From the NCBI GenBank assembly GCA_964187785.1, contig OZ076411.1, forward strand, positions 66,588,001 to 66,652,000: 64,000 nucleotides of DNA, given 5' to 3'. Made by a program: the position numbers and the translations under genes. This document shows, one piece after another, positions 14,614-33,870 of the stretch. The notes beneath the pieces are model-generated. The model was not told where the DNA came from. It worked only from the letters and a program-made list of their open reading frames with translations, and did not search any database. Every line of letters starts with the position of its first letter. The first letter of the stretch is position 1. The DNA comes from Amphiscolops sp. MND2022 (Eukaryota).

Positions 14614-15889
14614 TGAGAAAACCCTCATCAGTTCAGTTCCACAGGACCAAAAAATAATCAATGAGGTTCTTGTATTTCTAACTAATTCTATGAAAGAACA
14701 AGTTTTGTAAAATAGTATCTTTAACTCAAGTGTAGTATAAGGCTTTTTCAACCATAAAACACACCAGTTCTATATCGAATGTTTATGTTTGGAAACACTA
14801 GGTATGTCTGCAATCGAAACTCGTAGAGGTTAAATGTTTTTGATTGACGGATGAACCGTATAACATTCCCCCTTCTCTCTCCGGGGTTCTTCTAGACGCT
14901 GGATGAGGGGCCGGGTTGCATTGTGTTGTCCGGCAGAAAGTCTTGTGGCTTTTGTACACGTCCTGGTAGTGGTTGAGGTGTACTTTTTGTTCGGCTCCAT
15001 GGTTGGCCTGTAACATAAACTTGTTGGCCTGTCATATCCAAAAATTTCCTCTGTAAGGTATACTACCGTACCTATTCGGTTTGTTAGTATCTCGGTTTGA
15101 CCGTCTATTTTTATTTTCAGAATTCTCACCCTGAGGCATTTCTCCATCTGTATGTATTTGTATTACGTCGTTTTCGGGATCTGTCGTATCGGCGCATACC
15201 GTCTATCTCTGTGCGATGTGTCGTATGTTTTCCCGACTTCTTCCGTCATTTCTTCTTCATCATCATCCTCGTCGACTTCGTCTTCCGTCTCAGGCTCGGA
15301 TTGTTTTTTGTTTTGTACTATTTGCAGTTTTCTATTTAGGATGTCCCTCAGGATTTCATCCCATTTCCCGTATTTGCCGTTGAGTCCTCGTAGGCAACGT
15401 CAGTTTTTTGTGTAATTTCGGAAGAAACTGTAGGTGCCGACTCTTTTCGGTGTCTCCTCTCGTTCTGAAATAATGGGCAATAATATTTCAGTGTATACTT
15501 TTCCCCGTATCTGTTTATACGGTGTTCTCAGTTCCGCTTATTGCGGTTTGTATTTTTGATTGAAATCTTCCTTCTAAAGGTTTTCGGTGGTGTCTTTTTT
15601 CTACAAATTTAAATGGATACTTAACCGGGTGCTTTTCTTTGTTGATTTTGAATCCGAAGCCAATTGCCGTTCTTCGGTTTTTGTTCGGGCCATCACAATG
15701 TGATTGGTGATTTCCCCGTTAGCGTCTCGTCCGACATATATCGGTATCTTGGGTCGACTTGGAGCTAAAATAGACTATTCTGACCAATCTGACAGAAAAT
15801 TTTTCATTTTATTAGTTAGTTCCGTTCTCGTTTTTCTACCGTGATGTAATTCAACTGCTGTTTTTAGTCCCGTGTGTATTGTGAATCGC
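14614..15889 (-). mobile_element. Gypsy element, 3' half (integrase C-terminus, PPT 14866-14881, probable 3' LTR 14614-14865), separated from its 5' half by the 16.85-kb insertion
   Basis: The minus strand from 15887 reads RFTIHTGLKTAVELHHGRKTRTELTN, continuing the integrase broken at 32744. PPT gagagagaagggggaa precedes tgttatacgg. The LTR left edge is tentative. Confidence 0.8.
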
Positions 15890-15911
15890 CATTACAGTGC
15901 CAAAAGTGGGT
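15890..15911 (+). repeat. Left TIR
   Basis: cattacagtgccaaaagtgggt, exact reverse complement of 32720-32741. Confidence 0.95.
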
Positions 15912-15949
15912 AATTTGAATTTTTGCAGCGGATTTCTCTGGACGGCAGT

Positions 15950-16240
15950 TTTGGAAAGCGTGCAGCGTAATCCACTAACAAATGCTATTACGTTGCAGTC
16001 GATTCCACTCTTTTGGCGATTTTTCTGCAGCGAATTACGCTGCAAAGCATTAGATTCCACTATCAAATACCTTAAACATTCGGATCTCGCAGTGGATTCC
16101 AATAAACACTGCCGTGGATTCCACTGAACGCTGCAGTGGACTCCACCGATGGCCGCAGTGGACTCCGCCGATTTCCGCAGAGGAATCCACTATCGGCTGC
16201 AGTGGACTCCACTGCAGTGTTTTGGTGGAATTCAGTGAAT
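15950..16240. repeat. Left subterminal array of GTGGA(A/T/C)TCCAC palindromes
   Basis: About 8 copies, for example ccgtggattccactg, gcagtggactccaccg and gcagtggactccactgcag. Confidence 0.9.
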
Positions 16241-17014
16241 TGTTTCACTGAATTATTTCATTGAATTATTTCAATACCAACCTACAAAAACTATCAACCA
16301 TCGAAAAAAAAGTGGAGTTCATGTAGTTCCGTGCCTGAAAGTTCTTCCTTCACGAGTTCAGTTTTGAGAATGAGAAATTTTTTCAGAATCAGCAGGTGTC
16401 ACAAAAAGAAGGATTCAGAATTTCGTCATTCGGCAAACCATTCCCAGTGAGTTTTTACCGCAATCAAGCACCGTTTTAACGCTTTTGTTTAACTGTTATT
16501 TTTTCATACATTGATTGAATCATAGTGGGCATCAAAATTTCACACACAATTCATGCTAGTTACCTAGATATACACACATACCTTTAGGTATAACTAGCTT
16601 TTATTTTTCATTTACCTCATGGTGAATACTAAAGTTTGGTTCCGGAAAACTCACTTTAGGCATACTGCTGACTGCAACGGAGACCTTATCAATTCTACAT
16701 CAAATTTCACACACACCTCTTTCGTGTATTTTAGGTACAACTAGTTTCCACTTTTCAAGTACCTCAGGGCGGAATCCAAAATTTCAAATTGAAATACAAG
16801 CCGAAAGATGAATGGAAATCTAAATTCAGGTGAAGAAGACGTTGCAAGGGAAAATGTTATTCACGGTGTTTTGTTTCGATATTACGAAAAACAAATATTT
16901 GTACTTGTAGCAATCAGTGTTACAAAATGCAAGTGAAATTAAAACGAAAGTAGTGAAAAATCGAATACACAACAACGGAAAGTGTTTTGTAAACGGAGTT
17001 TTCTGACGATTCCA

Positions 17015-17948
17015 TCAGTCAAATATCGGTTGAGAATCTTCCTGGAAAAGTTGATTGGCAATGGGGTCATTGTAATCAAAACGGAGCTGCTCAAATGGTA
17101 GAATATCACGTGTAGCTCGGAACACTACAATCGTTTTGCCATTTTGGAACAATTCGATCACTGTGGGCTTCATGTTGGCGCCGTTTGATTTCAACTGCGA
17201 GTGGTTGGCAAGGCGAACAGGGCAGCGAATATTTGTGTGAAGGGGGCAAACTCTTTGGAGGCATCAATAATTCTTCTAGAGGCGCCTCTTTTAACCTCCA
17301 GAACGAACTCTTGCTCCACACCTTCTTTCTCGAGGACTTGGCTCAATGACATGTTCAAATACACCTCGCCATGGTAATCCATTAAAATGTCGTCCTTTGA
17401 AAATTTCTGTATGGCAATCACACATCTCCCAAATTTTGACATTTTGGCTAAACAGATTCCAGGCCACAGCTGCGTCTCACATCGCTGCGACAACCAAATT
17501 TTTCTTCATATGGCAAATTATGAGCAAATCGAGCATACCGAATTCCACTGCTCCCAGGTACCTGCGAGGATTTCCTATTTGACTGGTTGTTAGAGAGAAT
17601 CAATATCTGCGCTGTCATATTTTTCACGTCCTGGTTCGTATCCTCCAGCGAAGTCCACTTTTGTCGCTGAAAAAATGCCGCCACTCTTGACTCAAAATAG
17701 TTAATAGCAACTTTCGCAGAAACTTGTTCAAAGTAGAGCAAGGACCTGGCTGACTGGCGAGTGTACCTTTGCTGGTCTTGGCGGGCGCAAACAGCGTTTC
17801 TCACATCGTCTTTGTCGAAACCTTCAACATTCGAAAGAACCAAATTCATTGCATGTTTCAGCTTGGCGATTTTGAAGCATGGGTCATTGGAAAGGGGCAT
17901 CAGTTCCGCGACTTTACCTTTCAATATATATTGATCTTTTGCGGTCAT
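17015..17948 (-). CDS. SET-domain lysine methyltransferase (SETD8/PR-Set7-like signature), about 310 aa after two single-base frame corrections
   Basis: KFGRCVIAIQKFSKDDILMDYHG...IIDAS...RLANHS...VVFRATRDILPFEQLRFDYND. The frameshifts sit in short homopolymers (17499-17503 and 17248-17250). No introns seen. Confidence 0.88.
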
Positions 17949-19220
17949 TCAGCGTAAGTTAGTCAAGACGGTCTATGCTTCAACGGTGTAGCTGTGTCTA
18001 CGCGCGTAATGGAAAATAGTGTAAACTAGTCAAAGCACGTAGTTAGTGAAAAGTGGAAGTTAGTCCAAAAATTCTCGTTTTCGTAATTCAGTCAAAACTT
18101 TGACTAACTTCCACTTTTTGCAAATTGCAGATCGCTATACTTGCAATAAGTGGAAGTTAGTCGAAGTTTTGACTAACTTACACCATGTTTATATGCATTC
18201 AACACTCAGTGTTCATTTCAATTCCAATTCATACCACAGCATCGTAAACCAGTCAAAGTAAACAATGATTCGATAAATAATTAGTTATCATTACTAAGCT
18301 CTACCGTGCATAGTAGGTATAAACTGCATTCAATGCAAGTTGCACACGTGAACACGTGTGTTTCATCCACGCATTTACGTGCAAATAAAATACCTTGCAG
18401 CTTCTAATTAGTACAATTATAACAATTGATTGATCTGTCAACGGGTTTCCTATTTCAAGAAAATATATTTTCAAAGCAGCCTTCATTAATAGTTGCCTAA
18501 CTAAATTTAATTTTGGTCCCTGTCGTGAGCACGGTCACCGGAATGATTGGATAACTTGTTATTTTGGTCCGGGTATTTTGAGCCAGGGTATTGACAAGGA
18601 TCTATTTAAATCCCTGTCGTGAGCAACATCAAGAAAAGTTGTAACAAATAATCTATACAAAGTTGACACTTTATCAAACCGAAAACAGTAGTTTATGGAA
18701 TACCGATCTTGAATTATTGAACTAAAAACGAAGTTTGGACCATGTGCCTTATCCTCCCTCAGATAAATACTGTTTCTTATCCAACAACATCCCCCCCGTC
18801 CAAGTCTTCCCAAAGAAATGAAAGTAGGTCTCATAAAGAAGGGGCGATTGTTTCATTGAACTTGGTAATTTTGGTCCCTGTCGTGAGCACTTCCATTAGT
18901 AGTCAGATTGACTGTTTATGCGATTTGATACTGTGTATGCGATTCAAGCAGTGTAGTTATGAGTCGGCGTGTGTAGCTCACCAGTAACAACCCGTAATTA
19001 CCAGAAATATGTGTAAATATGAGATGCACAGTGTAGTTAGTCAAATTGCTTAAACTAGTCAATTGGTGTAAACTAGTCAATTACTGTACTATCCAATGGT
19101 GTAAACTAGTCAACGTTCGAAGCTGTGTCAACTAGTGTAACGTCCTATCAATGCGCACAATGTGTGACAAGTGTAAAACTTCAAAAAAAATATTCGCGCT
19201 CTGATTGGACAAAAATTGAA

Positions 19221-20079
19221 CTAGCAGGATCCTGCTAGTTCGTTACCGGGATGTGTATCGTAATGGTGAACTGTTAGTTCCGATGATCCAATTGTGTGTT
19301 CCACACAGAGATTGAAGGCGTCGCTCAGTGAATCTTCTTCGTGATCCATCACGATTTGCACAACTGAGTGTACCGAGACTTTCCGGATGGAATTTTCAAG
19401 CGTAGCTGGTACCGCATAATTGAACAGGGTTGTAGTTATGCATCAAAAGAGTTCCAACTTAGCTTTTTGTACTAGTCCCACATTTTCTTTCGATGCCTGC
19501 ACATGTTTAGCCAACGTTCTTTTGTACATGTTGTTGTCAAAGTAAGTAACTTTCGCACATATCCTCACTGCACTGGGAGTCAAATGGACGCTTCTCGGGT
19601 GGCTCATTGAGCTGGGGTGACACATTGGTCCCGGGCACATTGCTCTGGGGTGGCAAGTTCTGGTGAGGCAGTGAATTCTGTGACGGGGGGTCCTGTTGTA
19701 GTGGGTTCTCAGGCGGCAAAGGAATATGAGTCAGATTGTGAGCATTCTGCAGTAAATGTTCTAGAGCTTCTGTGGGCGTATGTTCAATCAAGTGCTCGAT
19801 CCCATCGGAGTTCATCATTCTAGTTGCACTGAAGAAACCTTCCTCGGGGGCCGATGGAATTGGCGAATAAGCTGGCGGACAAAACATGGATGCATTACTC
19901 AGGAAATCAGGCGGCACATTCCAGTCGGTAGATAGTCGATGTGACTGTTGCACAGGTGTAGAAGTCTGGGATGGACACAAGCGTGTTGATTCGAGATTTG
20001 AAATTTTGTCAGGCATGCTAGAATTATTCATGAACCTAGGAGCACAAATTTTGACAGCGGATTCCGCTGAATGAATCAA
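19221..20079 (-). pseudogene. Cargo ORF of unknown function (Pro/Gln/Ser-rich N-half)
   Basis: ORFs 19537-20079 and 19443-19640 overlap, and the latter frame continues past a TGA to a TAG at 19221-19223 (CITTTLFNYAVPATLENSIRKVSVHSVVQIVMDH...). No domain recognised. Confidence 0.45.
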
Positions 20080-20477
20080 AATTATGATGTAAAAAGAAAT
20101 GACAATTTTGTAATTAATTTTTTTGATAAAGCGTCGTTTTCCTGATTAGCAGAGACTCGATTTCACCTATTGCACTTCACAGTGACAAAATTAATAATTT
20201 CAACCAGTAAGTGTTATCAAGTTTATTACGGTGGTTGAGTCCTTCCGGGACTCAAATGCCTGTTCAAATATATTAACACTCACGAGATGAGTTTAAAAAC
20301 TAAATGCTAGTAATATTTTCCTTTTATTGATCACTCAAAATGGAATGAAACCTTCTTTTAGGATCATCACCGTAAAATTAGCCTCTTTTTCGCGCAGTTT
20401 TTGTGTTGACACCTGGTAATCACTTTGCACAAACTTGAACAGTTTGTGCTCAAAGGAAGCTCAAGTGTTTCTTTCTG

Positions 20478-21727
20478 TTGAAGTCAACTTTAAACTCCAC
20501 TACAATGCTTCTGCAAACTTTTAAAATATATGAAATAGTCCAAATCCTCGACCCTGAAACCTATATTCGGGAGTCTGCAAAAATAATAGCGTTCATAAGT
20601 GATTGGTCTCTGAAAATCCAATGGATCGACTGGAACAATCGTCTGCAGAAAATTGAAATTCCCCTCGAATTGCGTCTTGACCCAAACAGGTGGAACATTA
20701 GAAAAGCACGACATTCGCAACCAGTCAGGTCGAAAAAGCGTTCTTAACCCCTGTCGTATAACCCAAACCGACTGCAAAAAACGAGCCTGTGACATTCTGG
20801 CTACCCCATGGTGAGTGTGAGGGGCATTGATTTATTGATTCCCATGGAAAATTCAAAACGGGAACTATTTCGACGAATGACCCATCTACCCATGAGTGTG
20901 TCGTGTTTACATTTATCCCCTATTGCTATTTGAAGAACTCTCAGTGGAAGACACCCATGTTCACGATGAGAAAGCAGAAGACGACGAGGAAGCTGAAGAG
21001 ACGAGGCAGCAACATCGGGAAGAACCAAAACAGAAAAGACCTAAAACACAAATACCAGAAATAGACTTTTCAACATTGATACCGCAAACCGATGTTGATG
21101 TCAAATTAAGCTATGTACCTCGTGTCAATGGTATTTGTCGAAAAGGATCCATTATTACTTTGTCTGGAATAGAGTTCAAAGTGGAGGATTTGTACTACAG
21201 TGCACAGAAGTTGAAACAATTTGCAATAATGGTATCCATGGACGACGAAGACTGCGAACTTAGGATGCCAGTAAACAATTGTTCGTTAAAGACCTCGGAC
21301 TATTTAAAAAAACGTGGAAATCAAAATTTTCGCTCTTGATAATGATGTTGATAGAACGTTTGCAGTCTTTTCTGCAAATAAGAGATGTGTTGGTTTGTCG
21401 TTCAAGAAATCATCAACTGTGACAAACATGATACCTGCAACAGAGCTCACAAAACGTGTCTGTGGGTTCAAGTCGGACTCAAGCAGAGAAAACGTGAAAA
21501 TTTCAATAGAAGTTGAAACGGGAAACTTGGGAGGCTACAACAGCTTAGATTTTATATTGGGCCAGAACTGGGACATCATACCAGATACGCTTGAAGATGA
21601 GCCTGCAACATTGATCAAGACATTGAAATTGACGGAACATCGCGACTTTATGATGTTCTCACTCAGGTGCCACATAACTACAACTGAAGGCCACTACAAA
21701 AAATGGAGACTATCGACAAAGCTTTAG
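20478..21727 (+). pseudogene. Cargo ORF with an N-terminal Tudor/chromo-barrel-like domain and an acidic/basic linker, frameshifted
   Basis: FKIYEIVQILDPETYIRESAKIIAFISDWSLKIQWIDW resembles a Royal-family barrel. ORFs 20478-20747, 20896-21339 and 21314-21727 are collinear, and the last two join by removing one A from the A7 run near 21306-21312. Confidence 0.5.
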
Positions 21728-22125
21728 GCAAAACATTCAACATGCTTATTGAATACTTTGTTGACCAATAGGGGTAGCAATTTTGGTATCCACCGTGAGT
21801 AAATGTGCAAATACATCTTCAAAAAACGTCTGTTTTGTTACCCTAAACAAACTGAATGGTATTTTTGTTGGTATTGCACTGATAAAGTTCTTTTTCTTAA
21901 TTCGATTGTTACAGTAATATTGTCCTTGTTACAATAAATGATGTCAAAAAACTTCTTTCATTTGCGACTACTTTCTTGAAAAACTCTCCGCAGAAGATAA
22001 TTTCAAATTATTAATCAGAACTGCTCCCGATATGTAATAATGCTTTGTTACTTTGGTTTTTGCACATGCAAATTTTTGGTACAAACGTTCTACTAAACCT
22101 ACTAAATGCATCTAGCCAGAAACAG

Positions 22126-22400
22126 TAAGTGGATTTCACTAACGTATACCACTACATTGACAGTGGATTCCACAAACAATTTCTTAAACGTTTGCAAACC
22201 AATCCAAAAGGGGTACATTCAGTTAATTATTAGTTCTAAATAGACTCAAGTTTCTATTGTAGTGGATTCCACTATTCTGGAAAAAATTCTTCATCCTGCA
22301 AAAAGCGATATGCGGAATCGACAGACGTATTTCAATACACTAAAAGTGAGTTCCACAAACAAATGCTCGAACATTTGCAAACCAATATAAAAGAGTAAAT
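22126..22400. repeat. Internal repeat with GTGGATTCCAC motifs; inverted, rearranged partner at about 26400-26660
   Basis: The reverse complement of about 22150-22260 matches about 26408-26530, and that of about 22255-22320 matches about 26530-26600. Confidence 0.85.
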
Positions 22401-22792
22401 TCTAATCTAAATTCTGTTCAATTCTAAACTAAAGAGTTTGATAAAAAACAATAAACTATAAAAGTTTGCTCAGGCAGCTTGTTTGTTCACCATAGTGAAT
22501 TTTTCTCGAGGCTTTTTTTTGCAATGTAGGCTCGTTGCGAAGGCCAGATGGTAGAGAGCAATTTTCTTGCTCAAAAATATTTCGAAAGTGTCGCGGCTTG
22601 CAATGAGAGGCGGCAGGGTGTCTAAACAGATCATAATGATGGGATTTGTGATTTTTTTTCAACAGAGTCAATTTCAAGGTTTTCCGATAGACTAGTGGTC
22701 AAATATCTATGTAAAGTTTAACATCAAGACTTTGAAAACTATGACATCCACAATTGCGGCTCCTAACCTATATCGAAGACGTCCTTCTCTTT

Positions 22793-25351
22793 TTAAAGGA
22801 TGCTACGGTCACGTGTGCTGGTATTCTGCATTGCTTCGGGGATTTCGGCCTGGTGCAATGGTCCAATTCGCACTTCTTTGACAGTCCCTGTGAAGGCGTA
22901 GACTGACCATTTTGGGTCGCGATAGGGCTTCTCCGGACCCCTGAATCCCAGTTGAGTTAAGTTGAAAGCTGGATACACCTGGTAACAAAAGGCACTGACA
23001 ATGATGAATAGAGCGAATTCAATGAGAAATGTGCAAAATTACAATTACGTTTGAAGAAAATACGTTTAAATTGTTAGGCAGTTAGAAACGAGAACCATTA
23101 AAATCCGTAGTTCACAACCCAGTCCGTGGAAGAGATTAGTTTTTTTTCTACATTATCAGTTACCATTCATAATCAACAAACATTGATTACCATTTTGATG
23201 GCGTCGAGCTCACTGCTGATCTGCTCTTTCAGAAGAGTCAGTTGTGGGCTGGAGAAGAGGGGGCTCCATGATCCTCTCAGGGAATTGAGTTTCCGCTGGA
23301 GTTGTCGTATTTTAAACTGTAGCACAGCATAAACACGAACAACTCCGGGAAAAACCTCTTCGTCGTCTATTTCCTGCTGACTGGCGTTGAGGTGACTGTC
23401 CACAATTAGAGGGAATTGTGTGACAGCGAGGAAGTTGGAGGCAAAAGCAATGGCGTCTCCCTTTGTTGCCACTATATGTGGCCAGCGTGCAGGCACAACG
23501 AGGATGAAGACTAAATAAAAACAAAATAGTATACATTTAAACGAAACAACTGGTTCAATGACTTTGAATCATGTGCATGATTGATAATGTGCTCTTCGCA
23601 AAATGATGATCTGAGTACAAGTATGTACATGATCAGAGTACATTTACCTTTTTGTGGGGATATTGCTCCACTCCTCAAAGAGCTGCAAGTTTGATCTTGT
23701 CGGCTCCACCAGCCAGAAGATATTCTGCCCTCGAGCGACAGTATAAAAGGCAGTCGTGCTTGGAAAATCGACTTGCCACGGTGTGAGACACTGATCATTT
23801 GAGACCAGCAAATATTTTGAAGTAGCCTCAGTCAAGTGCACTGCTACATCCACACACTCATCTGCAAGTTGGTCAACCGCACAGTAACGGACAAAGTCTG
23901 GTACTTGGAAAAACTAAACGAAAACGACAAGACATCAGCAACCGGTTTCAGAACAAAGACTCCCTACAGTGGTCGCCATTTTCAACATCCAATTAGTTGC
24001 TAAAAATTTGAACAAAAGAAGGGTGCATCATGTATTTCACTGACTTTTGGCACTGTAAAGACACCAAATTCAAACAGATATTTTTTCCAATGAGAGCCCT
24101 TCCAAGATATGATAAAAAAAACTTACATTCTGTTCGAGTGCAATGTCAACGACATTGACAGGAATTGTCCCCGTGGGTGCTGCTGAGGGCCCCGCTCGCT
24201 GCTCGTCCAGGTACTCGCTCACTGTTAAAGACCTGACCTAAAATTCGAAAAAAAATATTTCAAGCATACTCCTTTGAAATTACTTTACCAATGTTTAGAT
24301 AAGTTACAGTGAAATCCACTGCCAACGATGACTTAGTGGATACTAAATCTCAATATGTTTTGATTCAACGTATACAATAATTTTTATCACTATTGGTAAA
24401 ACGCTAAACTTGAATGAATTTTGTGAAGTTCGAAAAATACAAAGATTGGCGGGATATGTTCACCTGTTGGTCATGTGGCAGCCGTGATGACTTTGCAGCA
24501 AGCTTTGCTGCAGGATTAGCCAAGTGCTGCAGCAAGAACTCCACTTGGTGGACGAAGTCCTCAGCGGGCAAAACTGGGAGCTTCAAACCTCGCGAGTTCA
24601 AAGCCCCGTTCTTCCACAATATCGGCTGGCCACGAGAGAGTGCTTTCAGGACCATGCCGTTTTCGTCTTCTTGCTGATTTTCCCACCTGCAGCAGTTCTA
24701 GGGCTCCTCTGAAAGCGGCATGTCCTCTAAGTTCTTTACGAAAAGACTTGATCCTTCGTACGCCCGTCGACTAGGCTCGCTCGACATTGCCATGTCGCTT
24801 TCTTTGTGGAGGGGAAATCGTTCCAGGTGTCTCTGTAGGGAGTCACTCCGGACAAATTTCTCACCACAGTATGTGCAAGGATATTTTTTGCTGGGGTTGT
24901 CAGTTTCTAGAAAAATTTATTGAATAGAATTTAAACTAATAACCTTGTTCGCACATTTTGACTATACTTATGTTCGTATTATGTTCGTATTATGTTCGTA
25001 TTTATTTGTATCTAAATCCTAAACTGTCACACTAAGAATAAATATATGTTTGAGGCTTTCTGGTTTGTATTCACGTCTTTGTGATAAAAGTTTTACACAG
25101 TTTTTTCAAGAAAAAAGTGGTAGGGGGAACGAAAAGAGCCGCAAATCGTTGACATAGTTGATCTACTTACTATACTTTCTTTCATTTTGGGGTATGTCTG
25201 TTGTGCAGTACCTCGCTTTCTCGATGTTCCGCTTGAGCGTTACAAGGGTGGCGAAGACCCTCTTGCAACGGGGACAGGCTTTGTTTTGCGGCTGCTTTGT
25301 ACCGCGGCGGCGGTTCGACTTGTACGAACAGTTGGGGCAGCTGTATTCAGT
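22793..25351 (-). pseudogene. Spliced C2H2 zinc finger plus JmjC (KDM7/PHF8-KDM2-like) gene with an ELM2-like C-terminal motif; one in-frame TAG
   Basis: GT-AG exons 25351-25171, 24906-24464, 24237-24127, 23913-23648, (uncertain mini-exon about 23610-23550), 23510-23191 and 22978-22793. Motifs: YPCTYCGEKFVRSDSLQRHLERFPLH; QPILWKNGALNSRGLKLP; SKYLLVSNDQCLTPWQVDFPSTTAFYTVARGQNIFWLVEPTRSNLQLFEEWS; VVPARWPHIVATKGDAIAFASNFL; VRIGPLHQAEIPE. The stop is at 24698-24700 and the start exon was not found. Confidence 0.85.
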
Positions 25352-25621
25352 CTGTAGAAGCAAAACAACATTATAGTTTATCCTCGAAGCGTCTTACATG
25401 TAAACGCCAAATATTCGAACCGCTAAGAGATATTACAACCTCCCATTTCAAATAAAGACCTGTTTTTCCAATCAGTAAAAGGAGGAAACGAACAAGCAAA
25501 AAAACAGAACATGCCAAAATTGCTAAACCACAAATGAATTTAGAACTCCACCATTTTAAAATGGAGATAAATATCTCGGTTGTTTAACAATATGAATAAA
25601 TAAAAACAAACAAATAACAAA

Positions 25622-25700
25622 GCGCTATGGCCGAGTGGTAAGCAACTAAACTATGAAGCCATAGATCGTGGACTCGAATCTCTATCGTGTCGATCCTATG
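25622..25700 (+). repeat. tRNA-derived (SINE-like) head
   Basis: gcgctatggccgagtggtaag (A-box) and gactcgaatctc (B-box-like), without a complete acceptor stem. Confidence 0.55.
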
Positions 25701-26790
25701 TTATCTCAGAAAAACTGAGTTTACCTAATTTTTCAATTAATATGTAAAAACTTTGATCTTGCTATCGCGAAATTTAGTTTGATTGTCTATGTTAACAAAA
25801 ACTTTTAATCTTTTCTTCATATCGTATCATTGCTTTCTGATTTCATCTGCCAACAGTTGAGTATCAAAAAGAAATGGTCTTTGACATGAGTATTGCATTG
25901 CTTTCCCTTAAAACGAGATAGATCGAAATCGGGTCTTTTCTGTTATTCCCTCCACTCTATTCTTTAAAAATTACCCCCAATATTTCTTTTGTCAGGATAA
26001 GAATCGAGGTATTTGACTCACTCCCTAATGATTCACTTCTCAATGATGAACACCTACCAACATTTCAAAAATTAGGACAAGAATTGTTGTATAGGACTGA
26101 CTTCATATTGATTCGCTTCTTAGTGAATTGAGTGGGATGGGAGTAAATTTGCTGGGAGGGGGGGGCTTTTAAAAGAAAAGACCCACGAAATCGATAACAA
26201 TTTTTTACTCAACGATTTCTCTGCAAATAGTGATCAGTTTTTCACTCAGGCCTGTTCAAAGAAGATGGCAGTTCAAACTCAGATTTGTTTTTACTACTCG
26301 GGAAAACCAAAAATTTCGTATGAAAATTCAAGAGCAGTTTTGCTGACAGTGTGTACATTTTCTTGCTAACTCAGGTTTTTCCACTACTCACAATAGATAC
26401 AAAAAATACAAATAGAAACTTGAGTCTATTTAGAACTAATAATTCACTGAATGTACCCCTTTTGAATTGGTTTGCAAATGTTTAAGCATTTGTTTGTGGA
26501 ATCCACTGTCAATGTATAGGTATATGTTAGTCAATTCCGCATATCGCTTTTCGCAGGAAGAAAAACACTTTCCAGAATAGTGGAATCCACTGCAATAAAG
26601 TCTATTTAGAACTAATGCTTTACTGATTGTACCCCTTTTAAATTGGTTTAAAATGTTTAAGATTTCTTGTCTAAGTTTCCGAGAAAAAAATGTTCAAAAG
26701 GTAAATTAGTACCACAAGCAAAGATTAAAACATATGTCTTCGAAATCATTTATTGTAACAAGCATTTGCAGAAATCAGAGTAGAAATCGA

Positions 26791-29700
26791 TCATCTGCTG
26801 GAGTTTTGTTGCTTGACTAGGCCGTTTCGGTATCTTTTCAAGGCCACAATGGCTGACGTGTTCGCTATTGATTTGTTATCATCTATTTGATCCATCAAGA
26901 GTCGTCGCATGTCAATAATTTTCATCGGGTTGATCAAGAGTCCAGGCCTTATAATATAATTTTCAGGGTCCAGTATGACGTTACTTTTCATCATTTCGAG
27001 TACGTATTCAACAGTGATGAACATGAGACCCGCCGAGGCAAATCTTTTGCAGGCCAAAGCTGCAGGAGACAACTTCTTTTTTGTTGAACACTTTTCATCT
27101 TCTCTGCTTTCGGCGTCTGTTGACAACTCGCTTGCGGTACAATGTCTATGGAGCTTCAGTTTTCTTCTCATGGCTTCCAATTGATGTTTATCGCCATTCG
27201 CGTTTATTAGGTCCTCTTCGTTTTTGACAATAACGTAAAAATTCAAGATATTTGAATGGGATTTCATTATGTTCTCCGCGTTTTCTTTCTCATAAACGAC
27301 ACCTCCCATTTCGGAAATTCTATCTTTGAGGAAATCCTGTGTGAGCCCACGCTTGAAGCTACCTACAATTGTAAATCTCAATCCTCGTAGAAGGTCGCAA
27401 AATTCTCTCTTTTCGCCAACGGCAAGGCAGGGTAGCGCCAAGGGAGTTCTGCAAATGTCTAGATAGGTTTTGGCACCCTCTAAAGTCTTTTCAGTCGTGA
27501 GTGTTTTTCTAACATGTTCAATTACATTGTATTTTTTTCGAAACTTGTTGAAGAAAAATCCAGGAACCGGCAAAACGAAAATGCAGTATCAAGAAATAAT
27601 GGATCTTGATGGTAAGTGGAGCCACCGCCTCTTATGGTTCGGGATTGAAAATTTCTGTTCGCATTGTGGTTCGATTTTTCCAAGCCTTCCCAGAGGTGAT
27701 TCCATGGCTTCTCGATGTGTCCGCTCTCCACTATTTGGGCTATCAATGGAAGCTTGAGCTTGTATGGTGACAGCCCCTTTCGCCCGAAGAGGAGCAAATT
27801 GATTTGAAAGTATGTTTCAGCCCATCGTTTGTAAGTGTCGACATCAAATGTTCCCTGAGTTCTCAACAGAATAGCACACTGGTTTAAACTTTGTCGTAGA
27901 AGCTCACAAGCGTCATAAATTGATATATATCTTTCTTCGTTTCATATCATTCTCAGTGCAACGCGTTATCATGTGTGTAGCGTCTGGCAGATTGTTCTGA
28001 CATCGATTATGCTTGCTAATGCTTCTCTAGGAACATGTTGTCCGAATGGGATCTTCGAAGATGTTCGTCTTCCATCAACATCTGAGCAGCGGGTGGGGAG
28101 GAAATTTTCATCGCATACATATATCGGAAGTTGTGACGCTTGGGAACTTGAACGTTCAGTTGAAGTTCCCAGGACCAAACGCGTCAAGAACGGGCTGTCA
28201 CCACTGTATGTAATTTCAACGCCCAACGCTTGTAGTTCTTTTGTCTGGCGGTATAGCCATCCAGATTCTTGCTTACCCAGGATAGACGGGCCAAAGTTTT
28301 GTTCCATTGCATATCGGCGATTTTTGTGCCACGATATGATGCAAAACAGAAGACAGCTTTCGATGATTGGCTGCTAACTGTGGTGTTCAAAATTCTGAAT
28401 GCTAGACACGTTACCTCAACCCCCCTATTTCGCAACCGTCACCCCAAACATCAATTGTAAGGCCTACAAGATTGGTTTTTTGCAGTAAAACTAATGACGC
28501 AAACGTCACTGCTTTCAGTAAACTGACTCGAAATCCAGAATAGGTTCGCTCAGGCTCGCAAATTGTAACAAACAATTTCATTATGAGGCGAGTAGCTCTT
28601 TTGATGTGACGAATTGACGGTACTAGGCTGCCACCTCCTAAACCAACCGGAACTAGCCTTTGTCGAATTGCATTGAGGATATATTCCATGTTGCTAGTTT
28701 TCATTTTGATTGAAAGTTCGTACCTAAAGCACTCGGGGGAGCCCCTGTCCTCCAAAAGACCCGTGAACAAGTCTCGAATGTGATTACCGCTTGCGCTTCT
28801 TTTTCGCCACGTGCTACGTTTCTGATGCTGTTCTTTGAGAATTGTGGCTATGGGTAATCCGTGAATAGGTAAACCATGCACTCTAGCAAAATTCAGGACT
28901 TTGGTCCAAAAAGTTTTCTTATTAGTTCTGTGCCACCTTTTGGGTTGTAATTGCGTAATATTCATATCTGATCGTTGCTGGTCTTTGGAATTATTAACTT
29001 CTGATGTCATCTGTAGCACTGCCTTTTCTTGGAATGTTACTTCAAGGGGTGTTTCTCCAACCATCTCATGTTGAGAAGAAAATTTATCATTTGTAAAAGT
29101 ACCGACATCGGGGCAAAATCTGGTGTTGGAATATTTTGAAACGAATTTTCTTCTTTTCTCGTTTCAAGGTAGTTCTTTATAGCCCCGCAGAAATAAAAGT
29201 TTCAATCCAGGAACCGGCAAAACGAAAATGCAGTATCAAGAAATAATGGATCTTGATGGTAAGTGGAGTCACCGCCTCTTATGGTTCGGGATTGAAAATT
29301 TCTGTTCGCATTGTGGTTCGATTTTTCCAAGCCTTCCCAGAGGTGATTCCATGGCTTCTCGATGTGTCCGCTCTCCACTAGTTGGGCTATCAATGGAAGC
29401 TTGAGCTTGTATGGTGACAGCCCCTTTCGCCCGAAGAGGAGCAAATTGATTTGAAAGTATGTTTCAGCCCATCGTTTGTAAGTGTCGACATCAAATGTTC
29501 CCTGAGTTCTCAACAGAATAGCACACTGGTTTAAACTTTGTCGTAGAAGCTCACAAGCGTCATAAATTGATATATATCTTTCTTCGTTTCATATCATTCT
29601 CAGTGCAACGCGTTATCATGTGTGTAGCGTCTGGCAGATTGTTCTGACATCGAATATGCTTGCTAATGCTTCTCTAGGAACATGTTGTCCGAATGGGATC

Positions 29701-31520
29701 TTCGAAGATGTTCGTCTTCCATCGACATCTGAGCAGCGGGTGGGGAGGAAATTTTCATCGCATACATATATCGGAAGTTGTGACGCTTGGGAACTTGAAC
29801 GTTCAGTTGAAGTTCCCAGGACCAAACGCGTCAAGAACGGGCTGTCACCGCTGTATGTAATTTCAACGCCCAACGCTTGTAGTTCTTTTGTCTGGCGGTA
29901 TAGCCATCCAGATTCTTGCTTACCCAGGATAGACGGGCCAAAGTTTTGTTCCGTTGCATATCGGCGATTTTTGTGCCACGATATGATGCAAAACAGAAGA
30001 CAGCTTTCGATGATTGGCTGCTAACTGTGGTGTTCAAAATTCTGAATGCTAGACACGTTACCTCAACCCCCCTATTTCGCAACCGTCACCCCAAACATCA
30101 ATTGTAAGGCCTACAAGATTGGTTTTTTGCAGTAAAACTAATGACGCAAACGTCACTGCTTTCAGTAAACTGACTCGAAATCCAGAATAGGTTCGCTCAG
30201 GCTCGCAAATTGTAACAAACAATTTCATTATGAGGCGAGTAGCTCTTTTGATGTGACGAATTGACGGTACTAGGCTGCCACCTCCTAAACCAACCGGAAC
30301 TAGCCTTTGTCGAATTGCATTGAGGATATCTTCCATGTTGCTAGTTTTCATTTTGATTGAAAGTTCGTACCTAAAGCACTCGGGGGAGCCCCTGTCCTCC
30401 AAAAGACCCGTGAACAAGTCTCGAATGTGATTACCGCTTGCGCTTCTTTTTCGCCACGTGCTACGTTTCTGATGCTGTTCTTTGAGAATTGTGGCTATGG
30501 GTAATCCGTGAATAGGTAAACCATGCACTCTAGCAAAATTCAGGACTTTGGTCCAAAAAGTTTTCTTATTAGTTCTGTGCCACCTTTTGGGTTGTAATTG
30601 CGTAATATTCATATCTGATCGTTGCTGGTCTTTGGAATTATTAACTTCTGATGTCATCTGTAGCACTGCCTCTTCTTGGAATGTTACTTCAAGGGGTGTT
30701 TCTCCAACCATCTCATGTTGAGAAGAAAATTTATCATTTGTAAAAGTACCGACATCGGGGAAAAATCTGGTGTTGGAATATTTTGAAACGAATTTTCTTC
30801 TTTTCTCGTTTCAAGGTAGTCCTTTATAGCCCCGCAGAAATAAAAGTTTCATTATTTTCGATGCAACAAAAACAGATCCCTGGGGCTGCCCTTTAATTGG
30901 TAGGTTTTGAATAAGATCGTCTATCTTCAGAGTCGTCCCTACGACCATTTCAGCAACGATTGAAGTAAGTTTCCGTTGACGATTTTGTAACGTGTTTCCT
31001 GATATAAAGTCTAGTATTTTGGAATCTATGAATTCTTTCCCATCATCCAGTGATAGATTGAACTTTTCGAATTCTGACATTTCTGAACTTTTAGACAAAG
31101 AAATTGAGCGTGTCAATGGTGTATCAAATCGTCGATAATGATGAAGCCGAAAAATTATCAAAATCCATTTCTTTGTGTTTCAGTTTCCCTCCTTTTGCGT
31201 CTTCTGATACGCCGTGTTTTTGCCTCAACTTCAAATAAATTTATTCTTGCAACATTTTTTTCACGGTATTACCGTACGCTGTTTAAATATTTCTTCAACA
31301 CCTGTTTGAAACTATTTCATTGCACGCGTTGAACTAAAACTACAAGGTCATACGTGCGATCACTAGTAGGTGATAAAATTAGGTGCAATTGTTCCCAAAA
31401 AATCATGTGGAAGGATTTTTCAGTGATGTTTTTTCTCCACCGTGAGTTGGTTGACATTGTATAGAAGATTTGCCAGCGAATGATTCTGTTGTTTTTCGAA
31501 CGTGAGTTGACCGTGAACAC
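26791..31520 (-). CDS. Divergent RAG1/Transib/Chapaev-like DDE transposase with C-terminal BRCT domain (about 1000 aa reconstructed with the duplication removed; several frameshifts)
   Basis: Ordered motifs LTIDVWGDG (D at 28438-40), TYSGDSPFL (D at 28197-99), PDATHMITRCTE, GLSPYKLKL and WEGLEKSNHNANRNF (E about 27678-80). BRCT about 26950-27400: LRGLRFTIVGSF...LKDRISEMGGVV...ITVEYVLEMMKSNVILDPENY. The N-terminal start is approximate. Confidence 0.75.
27558..30851. repeat. Near-identical tandem duplication, 2 x 1647 bp (27558-29204 and 29205-30851), covering the transposase catalytic core
   Basis: All ORFs recur at +1647 (27866 to 29513; 28411 to 30058; 29064 to 30711) with only scattered substitutions. 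Confidence 0.95.
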
Positions 31521-32289
31521 ATTTCAAGCACTACAACTTCTTGACCAAAAATGGTGAAAAAATTTTTTTTCAATTGAAGAAACTACACTTTATCATGACA
31601 AAAAGAAAGACGTAAACAAAACTTTTAACAAAATTTTTATAATAAGGAGAGAATTTTAGAATAATAGAGAAGAGAGGAACGCATCAGGTGTGAGTTGTAA
31701 CCATTGAAGTTGTAAACATTGCAACCATAAAGAGTGATTTTGAAGTTCCCACCATTCGCCGATTGCTTCACAGAATTTGTATGATTTTGACCTGAAACAA
31801 ACAAAAAAGAAAAAAATCTGGAACTTTTTCCTTTTCCCTACACTTTTCAAGATGTTGTTTTTGCAATTACAGTAGACTTCGGATAATGGAATATCGGCTA
31901 AATATCGAAATCAAAACTTCGGGTAAACGAAAAAAAATCCTCGGCAGTATAGATCATAGTAGCATGTTTTCGTTTTATCGAATATTTCACTGAATCGAAA
32001 ATTTTTCGCCGTTCCTGCATAATTTGAGCCGAACCTAAGTAAGTGCTGTATTGCGAGATAACTTCATCAACACAGGTATATTTGTAATCCTCCGTGATAG
32101 AGTGTTTTATCGAAAACATCAAAAGCTGTTAGAAGTAGCAAAGACTGAATTTATTTATCTAATAATAATAAATTAATAATAATAATAATTTTATATAATT
32201 TTCTATAACAGGTGTGGACGGTCAAAACAAAAGGGCCAAATGTTTTGTTTCAGCATGAAAAATTGCAAGAAGATTATTTCAAAGTTATT

Positions 32290-32700
32290 AATTATGTTTC
32301 ATTGATCTGTCCTTTCGAAGAAACTTGGAGTGGATTCCACTTCAGCTTACAGTGAATTGAACTTTGGCTCACAGTCAATTCCACTCGTTTTGCAGTCAAT
32401 TCCACAAGTTGAAAAGTGGAATCGACTGTAGGCCAAAGTGGAATCGACTGTAAGCCAAAGTGGAATCCACTGTAATCTGAAGTGGAATCCACTGCAAGTT
32501 TCAGCAAATTTCGCTGAAAGTTGAAATAAGCTGACGCGCTTGGTTCAGTCAGTTGGCAGTGAAAAGCAGTGGATTTCGGTGCACACATTTTTGTACATTA
32601 GCTAGATATGTTAGTGGAATCCAAAACAGGCTACCGCGGAACCCAATGAAAATCAGTGAAATACATGTTTAAATGTATGTCAGTGGATTTCGGTGACTTA
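32290..32700. repeat. Right subterminal array of GTGGAATCCAC-type palindromes
   Basis: About 10 copies (gagtggattccactt, gtggaatcgact twice, gtggaatccact twice, and others). Confidence 0.9.
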
Positions 32701-32719
32701 ATAGCAGAAAAGTGTGTTA

Positions 32720-32741
32720 ACCCACTTTTGGCACTGTAATG
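32720..32741 (-). repeat. Right TIR
   Basis: acccacttttggcactgtaatg. Confidence 0.95.
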
Positions 32742-33870
32742 GCATTACTTTTAGTGCTGGGTTTACGCTTTCGGTTGAGTTATTACCGTCTTCCATATTA
32801 GCTAAGACTAAGTTTTTCATTGTTTGTACTGCTCTTTCAACTGATCCTTTTCCGGTATGCATTCGGGGGGTGGGCAATACAGGATTTCTATATTTTGGGC
32901 ATTTACAATATTCTTTGTATTCAGTCGAAATGAATGCCCCCTTTATAAGATTCAATTTTTTCTGGAATACCGTATTATTTAAACTGATTTGATAAGAAAC
33001 TTATGACTTTTCCGGTAAAATCTATTTGTAATTCTTGTCCGGGTTCGGATAGTTTCCCTAATATTCCGTATTGCTTTTTGGAATTTGATATTTAAGGTTC
33101 TTACCTGTGGCTGAGCAGGCCGTGCAGTCCTATACTTTCTGTTCAATGTCCTTCCGCATTTCCGACCACCAGAAGATCTTTGCCTCGGATAGCATTTTGG
33201 TTGTCCCAGAGTGAGCGAAATGTAGAATTTCATTTAATTTTTTTCGTCGATGGGGACGCCACTATGATCGTCTACAAAGACTGAACCCCACCGAATTGAA
33301 AGCTTGTCGAAGACCGCTCTATATCCTTCCGGAGCGGTATCTCTTTCTTCTCTCCTCATGCTGGCTCTTACTTGTGTCATTTCCGGATCAATAGCCGTTT
33401 TTGAGGTAAGAATTTTCAAGTCTAGCATGAAGTTGAATTCCGCTTTCTTTATGTTCTCCTCCGTTATCTTTTTGTTTTCGATGAGGTTTCCCACTATGTG
33501 GATTATTTGGATATAGTGAGCTTCCTTGCCTTCTGTGTGATATTTGCTGAGATCGACGATCGGCAGATTATCGCCCCGCATTATCACGCTGTCTTCTTCG
33601 GTGTCTACCGTATTTTGTTCAGTGTGTGATTCTCCTTCTTCCGGTGTTTCCGGTTCTTCCTCTTCTTCGTCTTGTATTGGGCTGTATCCCCCGCCTATCC
33701 GGTTTGCTCTTTGTGTGAGCTCGGCGTCTATTTCCGCAATTTCTTCCAGGTTTCTTTTGTTTGGTCATGACGGGGCAAAAATTGACCTTTGTGATTGCGA
33801 ATCGTATCGTCTCCGCATTGTTCCGGGTCTTGCTAGAGCTTCTCTCGTTGTCTGATATCTTTTCGAAACA
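32742..33870 (-). mobile_element. pol: Gypsy pol fragment (RNase H-integrase linker, HHCC, integrase core), the 5' half of the interrupted element
   Basis: TAIDPEMTQVRASM...FDKLSIRWGSVFVDD; LHFAHSGTTKMLSEAKIFWW...DCTAC; GAFISTEY; GKGSVERAVQTMKNL...SVNPALKVM ending at the TIR. Confidence 0.88.

Follow-up and report, generated by a model that had tools for sequence, protein, structure and literature searches.

Several cut-and-paste DNA transposons carry genes that act on epigenetic marks. Fungal DNA transposons (Kyakuja-Dileera-Zisupton, Plavaka, ESTA and others) encode TET/JBP, and VANDAL elements encode anti-silencing factors (PMC12730594). A SET methyltransferase is attributed to HarbingerS and to Phytophthora MuDR in the text that cites their description (Kojima and Jurka 2014, Repbase Reports, as cited in PMC12730594). 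Here, we analyze a 64,000-nucleotide stretch of contig OZ076411.1 from Amphiscolops sp. MND2022 (assembly GCA_964187785.1, positions 66,588,001 to 66,652,000, forward strand), referred to as the window, and describe the element at its positions 15890-32741. This element is a dead copy of a ~16-kb multi-copy cut-and-paste DNA transposon. Its progenitor encoded four proteins: a DDE transposase of ~1000 amino acids (aa) ending in a BRCT domain, a KMT5A-like SET protein, a 417-aa beta-rich protein (that of open reading frame [ORF] 417, hereafter ORF417), and a C2H2-JmjC protein with an HxD...H iron site. A mobile four-gene element, together with the transposition and chromatin roles proposed below, is in our judgment the likely explanation of the locus as a whole.

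The element is comparable to the TET/JBP and VANDAL transposons in that cut-and-paste elements have, repeatedly, made an enzyme or regulator of epigenetic marks a stable part of themselves. However, those systems act on DNA methylation or by sequence-specific anti-silencing, whereas here we find three genes for a putative histone-lysine writer, eraser, and reader. SETMAR (Metnase), reportedly tied to double-strand-break repair, also pairs SET methyltransferase activity with a DDE transposase, but it is a host gene of primates in which a SET gene that already existed is fused to a domesticated mariner, whereas the genes described here are separate, lie in a mobile element, and accompany a transposase of another lineage. 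HarbingerS and the Phytophthora MuDR elements are, as far as the citing text goes, similar in being DNA transposons with a SET histone methyltransferase gene; they differ in belonging to the Harbinger and MuDR transposase superfamilies, and that text mentions no JmjC, ORF417, or BRCT for them. To the initial annotation of the locus, the combination was not known to have been described. In agreement, our literature search, which lay outside Repbase Reports and Dfam, found no paper on a transposon with SET, JmjC, and reader-like genes, nor one on a BRCT-fused RAG1-fold transposase.

Ends, copies, and decay of the element

The ends and repeats of the element are the following (window coordinates; TIR, terminal inverted repeat; TSD, target site duplication).

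15888..15889, unstranded: left TSD copy (GC), identified from the integrase ORF regained by excision and the lone GC at a paralogous empty site
15890..15911, plus: left TIR, CATTACAGTGCCAAAAGTGGGT, exact match to the right end
15993..16213, plus: left subterminal array of GTGGAWTCCAC motifs with a 22-bp period (motif and repeat search)
22115..22405, plus: internal repeat block with the GTGGATTCCAC motif, inverted partner of 26411-26668
24039..24060, minus: internal TIR-like sequence with 3 mismatches, within a JmjC intron
26411..26668, minus: internal repeat block, partner of 22115-22405 (144 nt, 88% complementary); the pair flanks the JmjC gene
32320..32514, minus: right subterminal array of GTGGAWTCSAC motifs (motif and repeat search)
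32720..32741, minus: right TIR, inverted CATTACAGTGCCAAAAGTGGGT, exact match to the left end
32742..32743, unstranded: right TSD copy (GC), identified as for the left copy

Perfect 22-bp TIRs 16.85 kb apart, subterminal palindrome arrays, and, from these, a large TIR transposon had been proposed for this locus, and our analysis bears out all three. The TIRs are a perfect inverted match of the form CATTAC...GTAATG, for which the expectation in shuffled sequence is 0 matches. Similarly, the sequence AGTGGAWTCCACT occurs 16 times in the window with at most one mismatch, compared with 0.04 occurrences expected; nearly all of these sites fall at 15997-16213 and 32329-32493, at a spacing of 22 bp. 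We presume that the two arrays are putative binding sites for the transposase.

The insertion site gives the length of the TSD. When 15890..32743 is excised and one GC retained, the flanks fuse into a continuous minus-strand ORF with the pattern of a Gypsy integrase C terminus. An uninterrupted paralogous Gypsy (contig L006, 1718-1777) aligns across the junction and has the GC once; therefore, the TSD is 2 bp long. The host site is thus a Gypsy integrase (15400-15889 plus 32744-33300, minus strand), and the ~65% identical copy at L006 1200-2700 represents the empty site. A perfect inverted repeat of 24 bp was considered as the TIR and rejected, since its outer palindromic GC is the TSD added to the 22-bp TIR.

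To find other copies, we used a 250-aa transposase ORF, which has relatives 64-88% identical on many contigs of ENA assembly ERZ25074608, and walked these contigs. Three additional full-length copies, named B (16,053 bp), C (15,876 bp), and D (15,584 bp), were recovered, along with an incomplete copy, A, and a deletion derivative, E, that contains a nested Gypsy. Each is collinear with the window and 84-93% identical to it, and the window-type terminus was also found in L006, L007, L008, and L002. The TSDs of the four other complete elements are CA, TT, TA, and CA, against GC in the window, and their flanks are all different. As such, full-length copies B, C, and D show the shared gene order in different surroundings that the initial annotation had suggested looking for. 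This order is left TIR, SET (minus), 417-aa ORF (plus), C2H2-JmjC (minus), transposase (minus), right TIR, and the genes lie in the window as follows.

17018..17948, minus: SET gene (KMT5A/SETD8-like), C-terminal two thirds, with RLANHS and LRFDY, in three frames (Pfam SET; tblastn)
19224..20145, minus: N-terminal part of the SET gene, P/Q-rich plus a conserved region, homologous to L030 1804-2376
20505..21745, plus: ORF417, a conserved beta-rich protein and putative methyl-lysine reader, with three frame changes (tblastn)
23176..25393, minus: C2H2 zinc-finger-JmjC gene (KDM2/KDM7/PHF8-like) in several exons, with QVD at the first Fe ligand (Pfam and sequence search)
26809..31179, minus: transposase gene, DDE core plus C-terminal BRCT (~26935-27396), with DVWGDG, SGDSPF, and EGLEKSNH, broken in the window copy

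A majority consensus of six copies restores long ORFs (SET, 349 aa; ORF417, 459 aa stop to stop; transposase, 794 aa; BRCT part, 213 aa), and therefore the progenitor was intact. The window copy, by comparison, has frameshifts in every gene, with two or three frame changes each in SET and ORF417, and carries two private rearrangements.

17941..19265, unstranded: private 1.3-kb insertion that splits the SET gene, absent in copies B, C, and D
27557..30850, unstranded: private tandem duplication (two 1647-bp units, 99% identical) within the transposase gene (repeat search)

The insertion contains short inverted repeats (17954-17969/18166-18181 and 18083-18123/18141-18181) and is probably another small transposable element. 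The duplication could be either a real recent event or an artifact of long-read assembly; each 1647-bp unit lacks ~370 bp that are found in all other copies, at 27943/27944 and 29590/29591.

Other copies have rearrangements of their own. Copy B has two tandem right ends (L003, 5850-7225 and 7889-8585) flanked by identical bases, as a local ~2-kb duplication that takes in the TIR. In copy D (L004/L008), the ~250-bp inverted repeat block with GTGGATTCCAC is tandemly amplified about six times. The Gypsy (RVT_1, rve) in deletion derivative E is nested near one end of it (L002, 3135-6364).

Fold and classification of the transposase

A DDE transposase with a BRCT domain had been predicted between the TIRs. 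The prediction stands, though the gene is broken in the window and invisible to Pfam. A full HMMER scan of 1.84 billion representatives, with a 341-aa ORF of copy B as the query, found 164 relatives, including full-length proteins of 980-1300 aa. No Pfam transposase domain was found on the transposase core or on 10 full-length homologues, several of which have a weak C-terminal BRCT match. Specifically, Transposase_21/24 and DUF4218 have no match on these 10 homologues or on the transposase of L030, a relative described below. BRCT_2/BRCT matches are sub-threshold in the window (26794-27588, minus strand, E 5e-5), in homologues P0028, P0031, and P0074, and in L030. A language-model Atlas search with a 250-aa transposase piece returned noise only (ribosomal S3/VAR1, 0.74).

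Since sequence searches of the PDB found no transposase, the classification rests on predicted structure. We used an AlphaFold2 (AF2) model of the full-length homologue P0028, which is 28-51% identical to the window pieces; its predicted local distance difference test score (pLDDT) is 76.5, with a core above 90. The best Foldseek matches of this model are RAG1, HzTransib, and BbRAGL, with the P element and Hermes further down. With VIA-align, P0028 residues 275-797 align to RAG1 459-1008 with Z 18.6 (410 residues aligned; root-mean-square deviation [rmsd] 4.0), and the model gives Z 17.2 against HzTransib and Z 16.2 against BbRAGL. Residues 835-995 of the same model align to the BRCTs of 53BP1, BRCA1, MDC1, and XRCC1 with Z ~11 and rmsd 2.2-3.3, which backs the BRCT assignment.

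An alignment of 31 family members conserves h-D-h-W-G-D, S/T-G-D-x-P-F, C-P-D-x-x-H...R..E.D, and H-x2-E-x2-E-K-S-N-H, and the D, D, and E motifs are kept across all 31. The C-P-D-x-x-H block of this alignment has a single, non-invariant Cys, and the H-x2-E-x2-E at the third acidic site comes without H(3-4)H upstream.

The predicted core thus shares with Transib, RAG1, and ProtoRAG a fold over ~410 residues, the D, D, E order, and a long insertion that separates the second D from the E. Two further likenesses to RAG1 are apparent by eye only: SGDSPF...R.V.G here compared with GYDEKLVREVEG in RAG1, and EG.EKSNH here compared with EGNESGNK. In contrast, the TSD is 2 bp in five elements (GC, CA, CA, TT, TA) and 5 bp in Transib; the window family has the terminus 5'-CATTACAGTGCC and L030 the terminus 5'-CATTACTGTGC, whereas Transib has CAC, similar to the heptamer of the recombination signal sequence. 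Unlike RAG1 and Transib, the family has a C-terminal BRCT, has no RAG2-like Kelch/PHD gene, and shows no sequence-level match to them. Consequently, the "RAG1/Transib-like" label of the initial annotation holds for the core fold, while membership in Transib is ruled out by the sequence searches, the 2-bp TSD, and the CAT rather than CAC termini; a fourth Transib hallmark, the C(2)C/H(3-4)H pattern, is not evident.

The CMC/CMCT group has 5'-CA...TG-3' termini and TSDs of 2-5 bp (PMC12730594, Kojima). The family resembles this group (EnSpm/CACTA, Mirage, Chapaev, Plavaka, ESTA, Lanisha) in its CATTAC...GTAATG termini, 2-bp TSD, and subterminal arrays, but no Pfam CACTA-type domain is found on family members, and C(2)C and H(3-4)H are not evident. 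Chapaev differs in its TSD of 3-4 bp and invariable CAC..GTG termini (PMC4079192), compared with 2 bp and CAT...ATG here. The fold neighbors of the transposase in the AlphaFold database (AFDB) include DUF4218 proteins. We take DUF4218 to be a CACTA-type transposase domain. Mirage makes TSDs of 2 bp, with which the length found here is compatible. Judged by the modeled fold and the termini, a separate lineage near the CMC/Transib group fits best, Mirage, Chapaev, and Lanisha being compared by description only.

Three chromatin-type genes and their inheritance

The SET domain reported by the initial annotation is real, but its ORF is not intact: the gene is longer, extending to the part at 19224-20145, and is cut by the 1.3-kb insert and frameshifted. 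The Pfam SET match at 17018-17263 (minus strand) scores 25.5 bits against a cutoff of 22.4, and proteins of L030 and L009 score 42-45 bits. With the L030 SET protein, tblastn matches the window at 17924-17027, split over three frames. The frame is unbroken in the consensus, L030, and L033, and in copy C the N-terminal and SET parts are joined in a 336-aa ORF. Both the window and other copies contain the cofactor/catalytic motifs RLANHS and LRFDY. Matches in the PDB are to KMT5A chains only (E 7e-5), and the element SETs match one another far more strongly (e.g., E 2e-20) than they match KMT5A. No named host protein is among the SET homologues, and the N-terminal region has no Pfam match. From this homology, the product is predicted to be a KMT5A-like lysine methyltransferase with a long N-terminal extension. 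A tyrosine-recombinase fold upstream of SET, an impression by eye, was rejected, given no Pfam, PDB, or Atlas signal.

A Tudor-like ORF had also been claimed. The ORF is a conserved gene, for which full-length relatives (P0175, P0176, P0181) have 417-434 aa, whereas the Tudor fold is only weakly backed. In tblastn, P0175 matches the window ORF417 at 88-93% identity in most segments and at 74% in one. In L006, the frame is continuous over 376 aa and the C-terminal end alone is lost to a frameshift.

The spliced C2H2-JmjC gene of the initial annotation is confirmed. It comprises several exons, with C2H2 fingers at 24701-24916 and 25166-25393 (Pfam) and a JmjC core at 23647-23913 (minus strand) that matches KDM2A (E 9e-10), PHF8 (2e-9), and KDM7 (5e-8); the second half of the JmjC domain matches ceKDM7 and PHF8. 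At the first Fe ligand, the window reads QVD...H, copy D HVD, copies A and B HVN, and L030 HQD. We therefore take the canonical HxD...H to be ancestral and the QVD to be private to the window. This does away with the "eraser-like" (pseudo-enzyme) fold proposed earlier: the ancestor had HVD, and QVD is private decay. For the family, a pseudo-demethylase was accordingly rejected.

More distant relatives show that the four genes occur together beyond the window family. L030, a 14.2-kb contig from another sample, contains a complete 13.1-kb element with all four genes, the terminus CATTACTGTGC, and subterminal motifs CGTGGAAACC. SET, a 424-aa ORF, and the transposase (848 aa) are there as long ORFs; BRCT occupies an overlapping ORF of its own in a different frame, and the C2H2-JmjC gene is divided into several exons. 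Amino acid identity to the window family is 36-57% for SET, 28-54% for ORF424, 33-57% for the transposase, and 27-39% for JmjC. A second family, ~70% identical to L030 and with the same four genes, is represented by L033, which comes from the assembly in which the window-family copies also lie. A SET gene also adjoins more distant transposases (~25-30% identical) in L009 and L010, contigs within which no TIRs were found, and ORF417 homologues adjoin a transposase in L009, L013, L017-L019, L028-L030, and L033.

Since all four genes are found in two diverged lineages, and SET and ORF417 beside distant transposases, these are core genes of the element and not captured passengers. As far as sequence comparison tells, SET, JmjC, and ORF417 are inherited together with the transposase, which excludes chance cargo. 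They are, in particular, not single-copy host genes confined to the window: they recur between the same TIRs with different flanks and in both diverged lineages.

The identical 424-aa ORF (L030/L031/L032) was called on contigs of three samples that are unrelated to one another (ENA ERZ1742291, Logan SRR4030075, and JGI 3300000422), and L031 additionally carries the neighboring SET gene. Such a distribution points to a small, widespread eukaryote as host of a nearly intact element.

Proposed roles and alternative readings

By analogy of fold with RAG1 and Transib, the transposase would bind the subterminal motifs, cut at the CATTAC ends, and integrate with a 2-bp stagger. We tentatively propose, at somewhat less than even confidence, that the chromatin genes couple transposition and double-strand-break repair to histone-lysine methylation. 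The SET and JmjC enzymes would determine how nucleosomes are methylated at the element or at donor and target sites, the ORF417 protein would be a methyl-mark-reading cofactor of the transposase, as the RAG2 PHD finger is for RAG1, and the BRCT would tie the complex to the phospho-dependent DNA-damage response. We favor coupling to repair because the constant partners are the putative reader and the KMT5A-like SET, because the transposase itself bears a damage-response BRCT, and because RAG1 needs a histone-mark-reading partner and SETMAR joins SET activity to break repair. As in the RAG1-RAG2 pair, the transposase is accompanied by a second protein, possibly a reader of histone methylation.

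Several results weigh against this interpretation. Family resemblance is the sole basis of the roles proposed for SET, JmjC, and ORF417. For ORF417, Pfam gives no match and the AF2 model is poor (pLDDT 47.7); its Foldseek matches to BAH and PWWP are local and not significant (E ~0.2), and the Atlas look-alikes of P0181 (Spin/Ssty, Tudor, and Agenet) score 0.72, which is within what shuffled proteins reach. These leads are mutually consistent, pointing, if weakly, to beta-barrel methyl-lysine readers. For the transposase, neither phmmer with window pieces and P0028 nor hmmsearch with a 31-sequence profile found a RAG1 or Transib chain in the PDB at E<=10, nor any transposase, and no obvious C(2)C/H(3-4)H pattern is seen in the 31-member alignment. 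JmjC has been seen in the window family, L030, and L033 only, the remaining contigs being too short for a judgment. The gene order also differs between lineages, with the transposase and JmjC swapped and inverted in L030 and L033 relative to the window family; the inverted repeat blocks around the JmjC gene may explain this. Finally, within-family dN/dS (nonsynonymous to synonymous substitution ratio) is 0.6-1.2, compared with 0.55-0.9 for out-of-frame and noncoding controls, and is somewhat lower in the JmjC and BRCT parts only. The copies in this genome have decayed neutrally, and selection is evident solely from the deep conservation between lineages.

The alternative that survives best is counter-silencing, which the initial annotation had suggested together with targeting, which is compatible with coupling to repair, and which we consider somewhat unlikely. 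According to this explanation, the demethylase, methyltransferase, and reader of the element strip or overwrite repressive host marks (e.g., H3K9 methylation), such that the transposase stays transcribed. Its best argument is a JmjC of the KDM2/KDM7/PHF8 type whose ancestral HxD...H is intact; the C2H2 fingers could direct this JmjC to DNA sequences, all genes are conserved along with the element, and precedents exist in the VANDAL anti-silencing factors, the fungal TET/JBP transposons, and, as mentioned in the citing text, SET in HarbingerS and MuDR (PMC12730594). However, the obvious enzyme for anti-silencing is JmjC, and this is the partner seen least widely, whereas ORF417 and SET are the most constant, and the BRCT fused to the transposase points toward the DNA-damage response. 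In addition, the only relatives of SET with solved structures are the KMT5A H4K20 monomethyltransferases, and KMT5A has been tied to the repair of breaks and to compaction of chromatin rather than to activation.

We regard as very improbable that the 16.85-kb unit is a composite of related elements nested in one another, e.g., a JmjC element bounded by 22115-22405 and 26411-26668, so that the toolkit would be accidental. The internal inverted repeats with the subterminal motif do flank the JmjC gene, a TIR-like site lies at 24039-24060, the relative order of transposase and JmjC is not the same in the window family as in L030/L033, and L002 lacks sequence equivalent to window 17501-24232. Nevertheless, wherever a copy spans these positions, it has the internal repeats and the TIR-like site at equivalent places, and these therefore are ancestral parts of one mobile unit; L030, too, has all four genes inside one TIR pair, and the truly nested pieces are private ones, namely the 1.3-kb insert of the window and the Gypsy of L002. 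Copies A and B also have the TIR-like site, as does D in a more degraded form; it may be an alternative end or what is left of an old nested derivative.

Large DNA transposons capture host fragments, and passive cargo, i.e., SET, JmjC, and ORF417 as transduplicated host gene copies with no function for the element, would agree with the degeneracy of every copy in this genome and with dN/dS values of SET, ORF417, and the transposase that equal those of controls, but it is the least probable of the readings, given that the four genes are together at 27-57% amino acid identity in separate lineages, with recognizable catalytic motifs and mostly long ORFs in L030/L033, that SET and ORF417 accompany transposases only ~25-30% identical, that the consensus ORFs are intact, and that no named host gene is among the SET homologues.

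We therefore return to a mobile four-gene element whose chromatin genes may serve transposition and repair. A stronger version is a conjecture that we hold to be unlikely: that the family is an undescribed, superfamily-level RAG1-fold lineage with a core set of transposase-BRCT, KMT5A-like writer, KDM2/7-like eraser, and a multi-barrel reader as obligatory cofactor, and as such an independent parallel to RAG1-RAG2(PHD). If this were true, the coupling of a RAG1-type nuclease to histone methyl marks would have arisen more than once, or would be ancestral to the group.

Public data contain about 160 cluster representatives of the transposase lineage. Pfam does not recognize the lineage, and many genomes probably have its members annotated wrongly as host genes. 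Few transposons encode enzymes that act on epigenetic marks, and most of these concern DNA methylation, whereas this family keeps a predicted histone writer, an eraser, and a probable reader co-inherited, and these histone-methylation genes accompany a RAG1-fold nuclease and a DNA-damage-response BRCT. L030 and L033 are largely intact relatives whose sequences can be used for direct tests. If the module serves transposition, the family would offer a tractable system for chromatin-guided target choice, the steering of break repair, or escape from silencing, and a natural comparison for the dependence of RAG1 on a partner that reads histone marks.

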